A stretch of DNA of 64,000 nt, taken from the sequence record ON529858.1. One strand, 5' to 3'. Positions 30,523 through 54,701 of the stretch are shown here, piece by piece. The notes below the pieces were generated by a model, which had not been told where the DNA came from, made no database searches, and saw only the letters and a program-made list of their open reading frames with translations. How positions within the stretch are numbered: position 1 is the stretch's first letter; every line of letters starts with the position of its first letter. Made by a program: the position numbers and the translations under genes.

Positions 30523-31230
30523 TCAGACCCTCCTATTCTGAGCGTAGAGCGTGGAGCGGGCAGGGACGGGCGTGAACGCCATTCGGCGGTGCGCGGCGCA
30601 GTAGGGCGGGCGACGGTCGGTCGTCGGGCGACCACAGAAGCTGAAGGCGCCGTCCTGGGGATCGCCGATCGGCCACGCACACGCGCCCTGCTTGAGGTCC
30701 AGCTTTCCTAGGGTCCCCGTCAACGACCCTTCGACCAGCATAAGGCGAGGCGCCGGCCTGGGCGGCGTGGGGAGCGAGCCCGCCTTCTCGGCGGCGGCCC
30801 GGATGTTGGCGCCAATACTGCGCGGCGCCACCTTCAGGCCCCGCTTCTTCTTGGCTCCGGGGTTGGCGTCGGCGCGCGGCTTGAAGCCCAGACCCAGGGC
30901 GTGCGCCTGCCGGCCTACGGCGCGGTGCGTGCGGCCCGGAATGAGGTTGGCGATGGCCTTGAGCGACGCCCCTGTCTGCCACTGTTGGCGCAGAATGGTG
31001 CGCTCCGCCTCGGTCCAGTCGCTGGCGCTATGAGGCGCAGATGATTCCGGCTTGAGGCCCAGCCCCAGACGGCGGGCCTGCCCGATGACAGCCGCGCGGC
31101 TGCGGCCGGGAATCAAGGCGGCGATGGCCTCGGCCGACAGTTCGGTCTTCCAGTGCTTGCGCAGCGTCCCTTGCTCCGCTTCGCTCCAGCCGGGATTGCG
31201 GGGCTGGTAGTCCGGTCCCTTCCTGGTCAT
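30523..31230 (-). CDS. gcrA: GcrA cell-cycle regulator homologue with duplicated N-terminal domain
   Basis: W..E....L...W....S...IA..I.G.SR.AVIG...RLGL occurs twice; C-terminus L.DL....C.WPIGDP....F.FCG.......PYC..H...AF. Confidence 0.88.
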   Translation of the reverse strand: MTRKGPDYQPRNPGWSEAEQGTLRKHWKTELSAEAIAALIPGRSRAAVIGQARRLGLGLKPESSAPHSASDWTEAERTILRQQWQTGASLKAIANLIPGRTHRAVGRQAHALGLGFKPRADANPGAKKKRGLKVAPRSIGANIRAAAEKAGSLPTPPRPAPRLMLVEGSLTGTLGKLDLKQGACAWPIGDPQDGAFSFCGRPTTDRRPPYCAAHRRMAFTPVPARSTLYAQNRRV

Positions 31231-51000: not shown

Positions 51001-53488
51001 CGTCAAGACCGGGCGCCGGCGGACGCGGACCGTCACGCTGAAGCGCTACCGCGCCTTCGTCGGCAATGAGCGCGTCGGCGAGATCGGCCAGCGGATGGCG
51101 ACGTTCGAGACGCGAGGCAAGGGCAACCGCTACGTCAGCGACCGGTGGGAGAGCCCGCGCTGGTATGCCGAGATCAAGGGCCAGGGCTGGCAGAAGCCGG
51201 TGTTCGAGACCCGCACCCAGGCCCTGGATGTGCTCGCCTACGTCCTGAACGACACGGCGCTCGGACAGGGGTTGACAGCCGATCTGTTTCCGATCTAAAT
51301 CCGATCGACATCAACAAGGAGGCCCACATGGATCAGCTTAAAGACTGGAATGCGCGGCGCGCGGGCGGTCGGATCACCATCGTCCACGCGACCGGCAAGG
51401 TCGTCGGCGTCGACGTCATCAAGCCCGTCGGCGGACGCACCGTCGCGGTCGACCTGAACGAACGCGAGTTCGATCTGGCGAACCCCGCCCTGGACGAACT
51501 GCTCGCTGCCGCTGCTGAGTTCGCGGCGCCCAACGACACCCCCGCGTCGCAGCGGCTGAAGGAAGCACTGGAGGCGTTCGCTTGAGCGACACTGTCCTGG
51601 TCGACGCCGCCAAGGCGTGGGAAATCCGCCGCCTGATGAACAGCATCAACAGTCGCCGGTCGGGCATGACGCCCGAGCGCGCTGTTGGGGACGCCATGCA
51701 ACCGGCCTGGGATCGCTGCCGGGGCAACCTGACCATCTCGCTCAACAAGGCCCAGGGCCTGTTGACCGGCACGGCCACCGCGCTTGAAGCGTTCGACGAC
51801 CCCGTCATCCCTTCTCTCGTCGCCGCGCTTCACCACGTCGGCCGGGTGCTGGAGGTCCAGTATCTGCCTGAGATGGATCAGCTACGCCACCGGGGCGACG
51901 AGGTGCATCTGCAAGTCCAGATCGCGTCCTTCATCCAGGAGCACGGCTTCGCTCACCCCGTCGACTACATCGGCGCGCCTTTCATCCTGGGCGAGACCTA
52001 CGAGACCTTCGACGGCCGCTCGGTCAAGATCGTCGAGTTGAAGCACGACCTGAAGGGCTACGAGACCGTGCTGGGCGACGATGACAAGCACCGTTACGAC
52101 CGCTCCGGCCTCCAAGAGCGCGGGCGCTGCACCGGGTCCAAGGCGACCTCCCCCCACAACCTCTATCCCCGGAGACTGTATGCCTGAGCCCCTGGACCAC
52201 GCCGCCGTCATGGCGGACCCAAGGTCGTTCGAGGTCACGGTCACCCGCACCACGCACGTCACCGTCCAGGTGACCGCGACGACCGAAGAAGACGCCCGCC
52301 AGAAGGCGGAGCGCGCCGCCGATCCGCTGCTGAAGACCATGCCGTCGACCTTCGACGCGGTCATCAATGCGTCCTGGCCGGCGCATCAGCAGGCGACGGG
52401 CGACATCGAGATCATCCAGGGCCTGGAGGTCCTGCGCGGCTGGTGGATCGTCACGTCCCTGGACTTCCAGGCGCGGGCCTACACCCCCAACGAGTTCTTC
52501 ACCGAGGACGTGGACTTCCAGGACAAGAAGACCATGTCCAAGCGCGCCCGCGAACTGCTGAACTCTCACGACCCCGGCAACCAGACGGTCTTCGGCGTCT
52601 ACCGCTACCACGGCTACGGCGCCCGCAAGCCGGGCGAGCCTTTCTGGACCTACGACGTCAAGAAGGAAAACGCCATGAAGGCCGTCCGCCGCCGCCTGAA
52701 CAAGGCGCAGGAGGAAGAGCGTCAGCGGATGGCTGCGCTGAAGCGCACCGTCGGCCTCGCCCAGACCGAGGCTGACATGGTCCGGGCGATCCTGGAGATG
52801 ACGAACAGCCCAGGCTACGGCCTGACCCGCTGCGCGAAAGGCCGCTGGACGACCCATGCGGCACTCGGCGATCGCGACCCCGCCACGACCGTCCTGGACG
52901 GCGAGTGGTCGGTCGACGTCGACGTCGTGCGTCACCTGCTCGATCGCGGGCTCGCCACGGTGTTCGACAAGTTCGCCGTCTCCGGTCAGCCCCGTCAAAT
53001 CACCCTGTCGCCCGCCGGCGTCGCCTACAAACCGAAGGTCCGATACGGATGAACAAGTCCCGAATCCGCGCGATGAGTTTCCTGGGCGGCTGCGTCGCAG
53101 CCGTCGGGATCACGGCCATGGTCAGCATCGCCGTCGTCGCCTGTTCGCCCAGGCCCGCCCAGGCCGGCGGCGAGATCGCGGCGGTCAAGATCAGTGAGAC
53201 CCCCGGCGGCTGCGCCGTCTACTGGATCAAGGACCCGAACACCAACAACGACGTCTACATCACCACGGTCTACGGCGAGCGCACCTGCTCGGTGGCGGTC
53301 CAGTGAGCGCGCCGTCCGAACCGACCCAGCCGCCCGCCTGGGCCTGGGCCTGCCTGATCGCGGCGATCGTCTTCGCGGGGCTTTCGTCCGGAGCCGGCGA
53401 GTTCTGGGGCCGCCAGTTGGTCGCCCTGTCGGGCCTTCTCATGGGCTTCGGCCTGCGCGAAATGCTGCTGCATAGGAGGCAGAAATAA
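48064..53488 (+). CDS. Array of ~17 small hypothetical genes (e.g. 48064-48414 Cys/His-rich, 48959-49336, 50613-50945, 51582-52187, 52180-53052, 53049-53306)
   Basis: Tightly coupled + strand ORFs with promoters at 48006, 48903 and 51272. Confidence 0.55.
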
Positions 53489-53514
53489 AATCTGACGTCA
53501 TCGAAAATAACTGA

Positions 53515-53543
53515 TTGACGTCGGCGGGTGGCCTCTCTACATA
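53515..53543 (+). promoter_or_regulatory. Promoter for the tRNA-like RNAs
   Basis: TTGACG-17-TACATA; the predicted start (~53550) coincides with a 9-bp hairpin. Confidence 0.65.
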
Positions 53544-53550
53544 GGTCATC

Positions 53551-53575
53551 AGCGGCGACGGACTAAGTCGCCGCT
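53551..53575 (+). other. Perfect 9-bp leader hairpin
   Basis: AGCGGCGAC/GTCGCCGCT with a 7-nt loop. Confidence 0.7.
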
Positions 53576-53585
53576 CGCGAACAGG

Positions 53586-53859
53586 CCGAGGTTAGCTCAG
53601 TTGGTAGAGCGCCGGAGGTCACAGTAGCGGAGGTTGGATTTAGCGAGGCATCGCGAACGCTGGTTCTTCACCGGCCGCCGCCATCCCGAGCGAAAGTCGG
53701 ACTGCCCCTTCGAAGGGCAGGACTTGAGGCGCCTGAGTAGGGCGGAGTGGATAGGGTTTTCGCGAGCCCCTGAAGCCTCTCCCCAAAGGTCGCCGAGACA
53801 ATCTTCGTGGTGAATAGAAGACCCGGAGGTCGGTGGTTCGAACCCATCACCTCGGACCA
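53586..53859 (+). ncRNA. tRNA-like RNA 1, with a 205-nt segment in place of the 7-nt anticodon loop
   Basis: Acceptor CCGAGGT/ACCTCGG (7 bp), D arm GCTC-AGTTGGTA-GAGC, anticodon stem CCGG/CCGG, variable loop AGGTC, T arm GGTGG-TTCGAAC-CCATC, A73 and CCA. Confidence 0.85.
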
Positions 53860-53882
53860 TTCGCGAGACGTGCGTTGACTAT

Positions 53883-54142
53883 CCTCCCTTAGCTTAGTGG
53901 AAGAGCGACAGGACCGTGCAGTAGGGGCCGTTAGGTCCCGCCCGATGCGAACGCCGCTGATTGCAAGCGGCGGCCGAGCAGAAGGTGGGATGAACCGGAT
54001 CGGCAGACGGGAAGAAAGGACCTTGTGTAGGGCGGCCCACTTCAGCCGCGTGAAAAAGGACCTGGGAGACCGGCGGAGCGAAACCCGAAACGCATGGATG
54101 AAGACCTGTAGACCCCGGTTCGAATCCGGCGAGGGAGGACCA
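53883..54142 (+). ncRNA. tRNA-like RNA 2, with a 192-nt segment in place of the anticodon loop
   Basis: Acceptor CCTCCCT/AGGGAGG, D arm GCTT-AGTGGAA-GAGC, anticodon stem ACAGG/CCTGT, T loop TTCGAAT (stem with one bulge), A73 and CCA. Confidence 0.85.
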
Positions 54143-54185
54143 ACCTCATTCAAGAGCGAGATCACGAACAGCATAGGAGGACACG

Positions 54186-54701
54186 ATGACCGACCAGCGC
54201 ACGAACCTGGAAGCCACCGACACCCCTCTGTTCCTCGCCGTCCAGATGATCGCCCGCGCCGGACTGGCTCATGGGTCGACCATGCTGGAACCCAGCGCCG
54301 GCACCGGCGCCATCGCCTCCGTCGCCAAGGCCACCGGCGTCGACGTCTGCATGGTCGAGTTGAACGCCCAGCGCGCGACAGACCTCCACAACCGCGACCT
54401 CGGGCCTGTCTGGTGCGGCGACTTCCTGTCGCTGCAACCGGGCCATTTCGCTCTCTTCGGCAAGCCGGCTCCGCTGTCCTTTGACGCGGTGGTCATGAAC
54501 CCGCCGATCAACGCTCATCCCCACGTCACCCGCGCCATCCAGTTCGTCCGCCCTGGCGGCCGGCTGGTCGCCCTGCTGCACCGCCACATCGCCCAGGGGT
54601 TCTATGACGCCCTGGGCGGCGAGTTCGAAGCCCTGCCCGACGACACCTTCGTCTTCAAGGGCAAGCCCATCCCGGCGGCGATCTGGTCGGTGACCCTGTG
54701 A
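54186..54701 (+). CDS. SAM-dependent amino-methyltransferase-like protein
   Basis: Motif I LEPSAGTGAIA; motif IV FDAVVMNPP(I); PGGRLVALL. Confidence 0.8.
   Translation: MTDQRTNLEATDTPLFLAVQMIARAGLAHGSTMLEPSAGTGAIASVAKATGVDVCMVELNAQRATDLHNRDLGPVWCGDFLSLQPGHFALFGKPAPLSFDAVVMNPPINAHPHVTRAIQFVRPGGRLVALLHRHIAQGFYDALGGEFEALPDDTFVFKGKPIPAAIWSVTL

Follow-up and report, generated by a model that had tools for sequence, protein, structure and literature searches.

The first 64,000 nucleotides of the 207-kb genome of Brevundimonas phage vB_BgoS-Bajun (ON529858.1; Dolichocephalovirinae), referred to here as the window (record positions 1-64000; 100% identity at identical coordinates over 901 nt around the inserts), contain a 700-bp gap without annotation between the genes BAJUN_01060 and BAJUN_01070. 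Two inserts in this gap had been proposed to be homologous to each other and to define a conserved RNA motif with a folded core, and the question is what kind of RNA these inserts belong to. We show below that they are the variable middle parts of two paralogous tRNA-Phe-like genes, both of which are split between tRNA positions 31 and 32 (31/32) by a self-folding domain sitting on a stalk.

Two interrupted tRNA-Phe-like genes and their relatives

Reading of the sequence revealed two tRNA-shaped genes on the plus strand, each with one of the inserts in its anticodon region (Table 1). Both genes possess an acceptor stem, a D arm, a T arm (GGTTCGAA), A73 and an encoded CCA. Neither ARAGORN at default settings nor Rfam at the gathering score made any call in the gap, as the insert opens the anticodon loop and thereby hides both genes from ARAGORN and the Rfam tRNA model. 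When the intron option of ARAGORN was used, gene 2 was recovered as a tRNA-Phe(GAA) with a 185-nt intron at 31/32, in the order ACAGG, insert, ATGAAGA (hereafter the junction strand) and CCTGT. The same junction strand is found in both copies of Caulobacter phage CcrColossus, both copies of CcrPW (hereafter Colossus and PW) and locus L371. By homology, gene 1 has the same layout as gene 2, namely CCGGA, insert, ..TGAATAGAAGA and CCCGG, with a longer junction strand, which amounts to 11 nt together with the preceding TGAA and is atypical for the family. For gene 1, ARAGORN instead proposed a tRNA-Cys(ACA) whose variable arm measures 24 nt, with U(-1)/omega-G; we rejected this call, which breaks the homology to the first Colossus copy (Colossus A) and to which nothing in gene 2 corresponds. 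Insert 1 is bracketed by a 9-bp direct repeat, CCGGAGGTC, at 53613-53621 and 53822-53830, with a near-copy, CGGAGGTT, at 53629. Gene 2 has no equivalent of this repeat, which may permit alternative pairing.

The methyltransferase encoded downstream of the two RNA genes has 40% identical homologues in Colossus and PW, and a ~675-bp gap without annotation lies directly upstream of the methyltransferase gene in both phages. This gap turned out to be a tandem pair of tRNA-shaped genes with inserts of 200 and 172 nt at 31/32, and all four copies read CCAGG, insert, ATGAAGA CCTGG. Insert 1 of Bajun is collinear and nearly gapless with the insert of Colossus A (z = 4.6), and the two have the loop UUCUUCA in common and covarying stems. 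From this alignment and the common loop, Bajun gene 1 is the type A orthologue, and gene 2 corresponds to type B from its place in the tandem pair.

Single copies were found in Rhizobium phage RHph_Y1_11 (152-nt insert, junction ACGAAAA) and in Paraglaciecola Antarctic GD virus 1 (50-nt insert, loop TTGACAA). In IMG/VR, a tRNA-like gene (5' C, 3' ACCA) was present 0.1-1 kb upstream of the gene for a cupin metalloprotein, the second protein encoded downstream of the RNA genes, in all 13 non-redundant cupin loci, and its insert was at least 100 nt long in 10 of them. Metagenome look-ups likewise placed such a gene within ~2 kb upstream of the cupin in nine cases out of ten. As a control, ARAGORN in the same mode was run on 240 random GC-rich loci, where it made no call, and on 78 unrelated methyltransferase loci, where it made almost none. 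The family of phage tRNA-like RNAs is widespread, and its carriers include many large uncultured phages.

Members of the family are characterised by C1:G72, A73 and an encoded CCA, and closely precede the genes for the small methyltransferase and the cupin, with which they share the orientation. Both Bajun genes display these three features, followed by the methyltransferase gene from 54186 and the cupin gene from 54698, an arrangement shared by Colossus, PW, RHph_Y1_11, GD virus 1, the IMG/VR loci and the metagenome loci. The cupin is the most conserved partner of the tRNA-like genes: between Bajun and Colossus the cupins are 55% and the methyltransferases 40% identical, and the two phages have no other neighbouring gene in common. 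In 11 of 15 further cupin loci (beyond Bajun, Colossus and PW), the methyltransferase gene sits between the RNA gene and the cupin. The cupin family comprises 1,817 members at E <= 1e-15, from metagenomic contigs of large phages. Searches from the Bajun side were less productive: exact-pattern scans with the shared blocks discussed below in IMG/VR, metagenomes and genomes gave only chance matches in GC-rich coding DNA, as judged by a screen of the flanks; blastn of the inserts against the phage collection retrieved only the inserts themselves and tRNA arms; and no close relatives of the Bajun neighbour proteins were found in IMG/VR or a set of 5.8 billion proteins.

The original prediction had called for covariation among homologues, and we examined it with 14 sequences, using the tRNA parts plus 8 nt from either insert end. 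In the cloverleaf arms and the insert-closing helix, 94.6% of cells were in standard pairs, and 19 of 25 pairs had undergone compensatory change. None of 500 shuffles matched these values, and slid controls were 32-51% paired; C1:G72 was invariant (14/14). The two ends of an insert pair better with each other than with non-cognate ends (-7.2 versus -4.3 kcal/mol), and none of 5000 permutations did as well. The junction geometry runs as follows: stem, one unpaired purine, 5' strand of the stalk, and then 3' strand of the stalk, 7 nt with GAA, stem. Covariation extends into the inserts. Colossus B and PW-B have exons that are 100% identical and inserts that differ at ~15% of positions, with eight compensatory pairs in four helices, internal ones included. 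Since the cloverleaf, the stalk and the internal insert helices all covary, these RNAs are real and structured, and the view that the inserts are not random insertions stands, now on the basis of a family of conserved structured RNAs.

The same evidence bears on the most sceptical explanation, in which the inserts are non-functional debris, left by a decayed mobile element or recombination in tRNA pseudogenes, and the blocks that they share arose by chance. The direct repeat around insert 1 would suit such an origin, as would a similarity between the inserts barely above chance (see below) and predicted folds that are no stabler than those of shuffled sequence (z = +0.14 and -1.23 for the two inserts). 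The debris explanation is nevertheless contradicted by compensatory substitutions in the tRNA arms, stalk and internal helices, by the conservation of locus, tandem arrangement and neighbour genes across very divergent phages, and by the perfectly conserved exons of Colossus and PW around an insert that evolves with its structure maintained. We regard it as very improbable.

Shared blocks and variability of the inserts

Six colinear blocks had been reported for the two Bajun inserts. All of them are present in both inserts (Table 1), and the hairpins reported with them exist. We then asked how much similarity the blocks amount to, in comparison with dinucleotide-preserving shuffles. Global alignment of insert 1 with insert 2 gave z = 2.0, with 22 of 500 shuffles scoring equally well or better, and a second alignment scoring gave z = 2.6. 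The colinear block chain reached z = 1.7-2.0 (24 of 500 and 38 of 1000 shuffles equal or better), and a common 9-mer within +-15 nt arose in 83 of 2000 shuffles. Sensitive blastn between the two inserts found no match. A third copy of GTAGGGCGG, at 30601-30609 in an unrelated region of the window, is taken as chance, given that one shuffle in 100 yields at least three copies. Taken from sequence alone, homology of the two inserts would thus be weakly supported; their common origin finds its support chiefly in context, because they occupy the same insertion site in adjacent tRNA-like genes and because Colossus and PW have the same tandem pair.

The blocks did not prove to be a conserved motif. 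None of 11 inserts from other phages contained the full blocks, and the 5-nt block cores occurred in these inserts at chance frequency. The order AGUAG..GCGAA..CCGAG..GAGAC was retained in RHph_Y1_11 only, and GGAUAG was mildly enriched (3/11, p = 0.018). The terminal blocks are accounted for by their position: the C of CAGTAG is the end of the insert-closing helix, or stalk, and the GAAGA(C) block is made up of GAA and positions 37-38, both in the anticodon-loop strand, plus the base with which the 3' strand of the anticodon stem begins. Another pair of blocks may be explained by local structure, as comparison of four sequence types suggests that GCGAAC pairs with CCGAGC in a helix of 2-4 bp followed by tandem G.A pairs. 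We conclude that the six blocks are mostly residual similarity between paralogues together with local structure (closing helix, tandem-G.A helix, anticodon strand), and not a catalytic core.

The rest of the inserts is highly variable. Most pairs of inserts in the family align with z ~0, and nhmmer profiles built from the inserts of other phages did not retrieve those of Bajun. Insert sizes range from 50 to 200 nt, and the sites in the tRNA scaffold differ; in locus L375, it is the 3' side of the anticodon loop that carries the insert. The inserts match none of the ribozyme or intron families of Rfam, and small ribozymes (hammerhead, twister, HDV-like, pistol, hatchet, hairpin and VS) gave no match at E <= 10 in 53450-54250 or in the Colossus and PW loci. 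This variability in sequence, size and position, which extends to the D-loop, argues against one conserved catalytic core. The folded core that the original prediction had envisaged, whether ribozyme, protein-binding scaffold or sensor, could therefore not be upheld as a catalytic one: the blocks are not recurrent, the inserts cannot be aligned, their sizes and sites vary, and their folds are no stabler than shuffled sequence. A universal ribozyme core is unlikely, and a protein-binding scaffold is a live option. We also considered whether a hairpin loop with CUUC might pair with GAAG(A) of the junction strand, a tertiary contact that was not significant across the family (Fisher p = 0.21) and is missing in locus L364. 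The pairing is plausible in the phages of Alphaproteobacteria, and looks attractive in both Bajun genes, Colossus A and L371.

Several cupin loci depart from the common layout. In L384 (2458-2624) and L385 (2487-2654), an insert of ~75-90 nt resides in the D-loop and the anticodon stem-loop (UUCACAC) is intact; gene callers had stretched the cupin reading frame over both tRNA-like genes. In loci L363 (1938-2014), L382 (1983-2060) and L373 (2375-2448), the tRNA-like gene beside the cupin is uninterrupted and its loop is abnormal (UAGAUUAA, UAGAUUA and UGUACUAA), being 8 nt long or having A at position 33. In L372 (2258-2325), the model of YrlA (Y RNA-like) gave a sub-threshold match (38 bits, E = 8e-5) just ahead of a tRNA gene that adjoins the cupin and has a 30-nt insert. 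In RHph_Y1_11 (MN988558.1; locus L279, 2270-2510), the coding sequence of the methyltransferase, EVC30_106, has its annotated start 10 nt before the interrupted tRNA-like gene and crosses the whole of it, ~75 codons, with no stop; the conserved N-terminus of the methyltransferase (RTNL..) overlaps the 3' acceptor strand of the tRNA. Either EVC30_106 has been given a wrong start, or its coding sequence overlaps the RNA gene.

Excision or retention of the insert

Interrupted tRNA genes of bacteria and phages are normally taken as group I introns. The IC3-type introns in Azoarcus tRNA-Ile, cyanobacterial tRNA-Leu and Agrobacterium tRNA-Arg are, like the inserts described here, anticodon-region insertions of ~150-250 nt that end in G and whose removal restores the cloverleaf. 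Highly diverged members of this group, self-splicing with guanosine, would account for the location in the tRNA anticodon loop, the size of 150-200 nt and the G at the 3' end of every insert. We nevertheless consider a group I origin unlikely, as (i) the Rfam model Intron_gpI (RF00028) had no match at the gathering score, E <= 10 or E <= 1 in ~15 loci (Bajun, Colossus, PW and 12 IMG/VR loci), (ii) the last exon base is G in most members, and sliding of the junction allows only G, G or A before the 5' junction and never U or C, (iii) the two ends of the insert form a helix together, where a group I intron would have P1 and a docked or free omega-G, and no internal guide sequence was found near the 5' end of the insert, and (iv) the sequence that follows AGACUAG in Colossus A is too short for P3', P8 and J8/7. 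Family inserts further differ from IC3 introns in preceding the first loop nucleotide (31/32), in having no family-wide core and in the linkage of their genes to two protein genes. The strings GCGAA(A)C, CCGAGCCAAGC (Colossus A), GUGUAG, AGACUAG and GGUGUCAAA (L365) may resemble core elements of the Azoarcus and Anabaena tRNA introns in the same order, which we take as a lead and not as a test. The terminal omega-G is not diagnostic, because the same G closes the C:G pair of the stalk. For comparison, Intron_gpI at >=18 bits recovers ~83% of bacterial tRNA group I introns, and U(-1)/omega-G is found in 98.5% of mapped ones (10.1101/2020.01.27.920355). The inserts are thus not recognisable as group I introns. 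Locus L341, tried as a positive control for a group I tRNA intron, proved to be a spurious ARAGORN call.

The junction strand offers a second view of the RNA. All 14 distinct members of the GAA type have GAA at 34-36 and a purine at 37. The neighbouring bases are less regular: position 33 is U, C or A (other than U in 4/13 members), and position 32 is mostly a purine, A or G. Compared with canonical decoding tRNAs (RF00005), the family has the covarying cloverleaf and lacks the closed 7-nt loop with U33 and a pyrimidine at 32. The elements by which phenylalanyl-tRNA synthetase (PheRS) recognises bacterial tRNA-Phe are GAA, A73, U20 and a variable loop of the GUGUC type. Since GAA is invariant while positions 33 and 32 deviate, the pattern is more in keeping with predicted recognition of the three anticodon bases, as by PheRS, than with ribosomal decoding. 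A73, which is invariant in the family, U20, which is common, and the variable loops of GUGUC type point the same way. Two GAA paralogues are retained in each of three phages. An ordinary tRNA-Phe(GAA)-like gene is, moreover, present in the main tRNA cluster of Bajun, outside the window, at record positions 137351-137422 (23351-23422 of L019). This gene is uninterrupted and scores 40.7 bits with the Rfam tRNA model; it was missed by ARAGORN and is absent from the GenBank annotation.

We slightly favour, as a tentative reading, that the insert is a retained domain and that the RNA does not decode but is a tRNA-like companion of the two proteins, methyltransferase and cupin, possibly chargeable with Phe. 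The extra domain would be a lineage-specific expansion kept in the mature RNA, where it could keep the molecule off the ribosome and leave exposed the elements read by PheRS (GAA, A73, U20 and the GUGUC-type variable loop). The RNA may then act as a dedicated partner of the methyltransferase-cupin pair, for which it could be a substrate, an aminoacyl carrier or a scaffold, and would have no decoding role. Known RNAs have a comparable architecture. In transfer-messenger RNA (tmRNA), YrlA and engineered tRNA scaffolds, a tRNA-shaped acceptor/T-arm module bears a large non-tRNA domain at the anticodon-arm end, which is where the scaffolds hold their cargo RNA. The family likewise combines an acceptor/T-arm module and an encoded CCA with a large extra domain; it differs from tmRNA and YrlA in its complete D arm and anticodon stem, and it has neither G3:U70 nor a conserved tag frame. 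The Bajun copies have G:C or U:A as pair 3:70, the short frames that start from GCGAAC are not conserved between them and make up no conserved tag reading frame, and Bajun encodes its own permuted tmRNA of the two-piece type elsewhere in its genome. The YrlA model gave sub-threshold matches only, which run from the T arm of one gene into the D arm of the one behind it. Tag frames like those of tmRNA, hammerhead-like strings, bulge-helix-bulge motifs and a target-site duplication were all considered and rejected on sequence.

A number of observations weigh against retention. Were the insert removed, an almost perfect cloverleaf would result, its anticodon stem 5 bp long and its loop, in 12 of 13 members, of exactly 7 nucleotides with a purine at 37; this is what an excised intron predicts. 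The presence or absence of inserts, and their variable size and sequence, are typical of introns, and the terminal G of every insert is shared with group I. Some members have GAC, AAC, GAU or CAC in place of GAA. In GD virus 1 (L360, 435-2288), an RNA ligase (gp191) and a phosphatase (gp192) are encoded directly upstream of the tRNA-like gene and the cupin. The linkage to the protein genes could stem from co-transcription with no relationship between RNA and proteins, and the fold predicted for the cupin gives no functional clue: its AlphaFold model (pLDDT, the predicted local distance difference test, 92) matches generic Mn/Fe metal-binding cupins only.

These points make excision a serious alternative, possible and nearly as likely as retention. 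An intron of an undescribed kind would be cut out exactly at the foot of the closing helix, either through a self-splicing fold that has escaped recognition or by protein, to give a functional tRNA-Phe(GAA); if by protein, a nuclease and a ligase of host or phage, possibly including the linked proteins, might be responsible. Such excision would explain why ARAGORN rebuilds clean cloverleaves with 5-bp anticodon stems and 7-nt loops with GAA and purine 37, why the insertion site is identical (31/32) in most members, and why the junction geometry, with one unpaired purine and then a stalk ending in G, is conserved around highly variable inserts, as expected if excision alone matters. The ligase and phosphatase encoded beside the GD virus 1 gene point in this direction as well. 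A decoding tRNA or a plain intron is nevertheless disfavoured because positions 33 and 32 are odd, because an ordinary tRNA-Phe is already there, because two GAA paralogues are kept, and because D-loop and 3'-side inserts and uninterrupted members with abnormal loops share the same gene context. In addition, the 11-nt strand of Bajun gene 1 cannot yield a normal loop, and homologues of the GD virus 1 ligase and phosphatase were found neither in the Bajun genome nor in other cupin loci. The protein-spliced tRNA introns of archaea and eukaryotes resemble the family in their variable sequence, in their several sites (31/32, 38/39 and D-loop in the family) and in junctions conserved in structure and not in sequence. 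The family junctions differ in that they do not form the bulge-helix-bulge of two 3-nt bulges around a 4-bp helix, and a tRNA splicing endonuclease is not known from bacteria, nor from the hosts and phages of the family.

A precedent is provided by the 'enigmatic' tRNA introns of Lak megaphages (Devoto et al. 2019, PMC6784885), which are likewise described as interruptions of phage tRNA genes by sequence that Rfam does not classify. No linkage to a cupin or methyltransferase is reported for them, and their hosts (Prevotella) and genome composition are unrelated (PMC6784885). The paper on the phiCbK and Colossus genomes gives Rfam tRNAs only and reports no introns (PMC3556154). In the literature, we found no description of the module of tRNA-like gene, methyltransferase and cupin, and no precedent for unclassified phage tRNA introns other than that of the Lak megaphages. 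The family of interrupted phage tRNA-like RNAs is apparently undescribed.

In our judgement the chances are even that the family represents a new class, either of non-decoding phage tRNA-like RNAs whose structured expansion domain, at 31/32 or at another site of the scaffold, works with a methyltransferase of RNA type dedicated to it and with a cupin metalloenzyme (the RNA might be a carrier, modified or aminoacylated, or else a decoy or a ribonucleoprotein scaffold in phage-host conflict), or of tRNA introns outside group I that need these proteins for removal. The family does not pass the defining tests of group I introns; nonetheless its members are conserved and structured, and their linkage to two enzymes is tight. 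Retention of the insert would mean a new kind of viral tRNA-derived functional RNA, and excision a new splicing route in bacterial systems. On either reading the annotation of phage tRNA repertoires changes, as default tRNA finders miss such genes and the region is annotated as protein-coding in one phage. The Caulobacter and Brevundimonas phages make the family experimentally tractable.

Feature coordinates and gene neighbourhood

Table 1. Coordinates in the window of the two tRNA-like genes of Bajun, their inserts, the shared blocks and neighbouring features.
Feature	Position	Strand	Remarks
tRNA-like gene 1 (type A)	53586..53859	+	274 nt; not annotated in GenBank ON529858.1
Gene 1 arms			acceptor stem CCGAGGT/ACCTCGG; D arm present; T arm GGTGG-TTCGAAC-CCATC; A73; encoded CCA
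Insert 1	53617..53814	+	198 nt; flanked by anticodon-stem strands CCGGA (53612-53616) and CCCGG (53822-53826)
Insert 1, short closing helix	53618-53622 / 53807-53811		(G)TCAC / GTGG(T)
Insert 1, hairpin	53659-53675		GCTGGT-TCTTC-ACCGGC; loop UUCUUCA also in Colossus A
Gene 1 junction strand	53815..53821	+	TAGAAGA; anticodon-loop positions 32-38, GAA at 34-36
tRNA-like gene 2 (type B)	53883..54142	+	260 nt; not annotated
Insert 2	53913..54097	+	185 nt; a single unpaired A precedes closing helix CCGTGC (53914-53919) / GCATGG (54092-54097)
Insert 2, motif around hairpin	53952-53972 (hairpin)		TGC-GAA-[hairpin]-CCGA-GCA; by inspection, read as short helix and tandem G.A pairs
Insert 2, hairpin	54032-54049		GCGGC-CCACTTCA-GCCGC
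Gene 2 junction strand	54098..54104	+	ATGAAGA; 7-nt equivalent of the anticodon loop; then 3' strand of the stem, CCTGT (54105-54109)
Block CAGTAG	53622 (insert 1); 53919 (insert 2)		
Block GCGAACGC	53653 (insert 1); 53947 (insert 2)		
Block CCGAGC	53686 (insert 1); 53974 (insert 2)		
Block GTAGGGCGG	53737 (insert 1); 54027 (insert 2)		
Block GAGAC	53795 (insert 1); 54066 (insert 2)		
Block GAAGAC	53817 (insert 1); 54100 (insert 2)		
Possible promoter	53515..53543	+	TTGACG-17 nt-TACATA; ~40 nt upstream of gene 1; putative, by eye
Methyltransferase BAJUN_01070	54186..54701	+	small, S-adenosylmethionine-dependent
Cupin metalloprotein BAJUN_01080	54698..55138	+	146 amino acids; PHROG 4786, label 'cysteine dioxygenase'

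The putative promoter upstream of gene 1 was not called in a consensus promoter scan, its -10 hexamer ending in A. GACGTC palindromes occur at 53494 and 53517, just upstream of gene 1. No terminator-like site was found from the RNA genes to the methyltransferase gene, which suggests that these genes share one transcript. The weak relatives of the methyltransferase in the PDB are mostly RNA methyltransferases.

Elsewhere in the genome, tRNA genes lie at 133-138 kb and 191-193 kb of ON529858.1. Once the gene at 137351-137422 is included, only Lys and Ala are missing from the standard tRNA set of Bajun. A tRNA-Arg called by ARAGORN at 136349-136432 lies inside a peptide deformylase gene and is probably false. 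Among the tRNAs of these two regions, those for Trp, Asn and Cys and one for Arg have long variable arms, and many begin with C.

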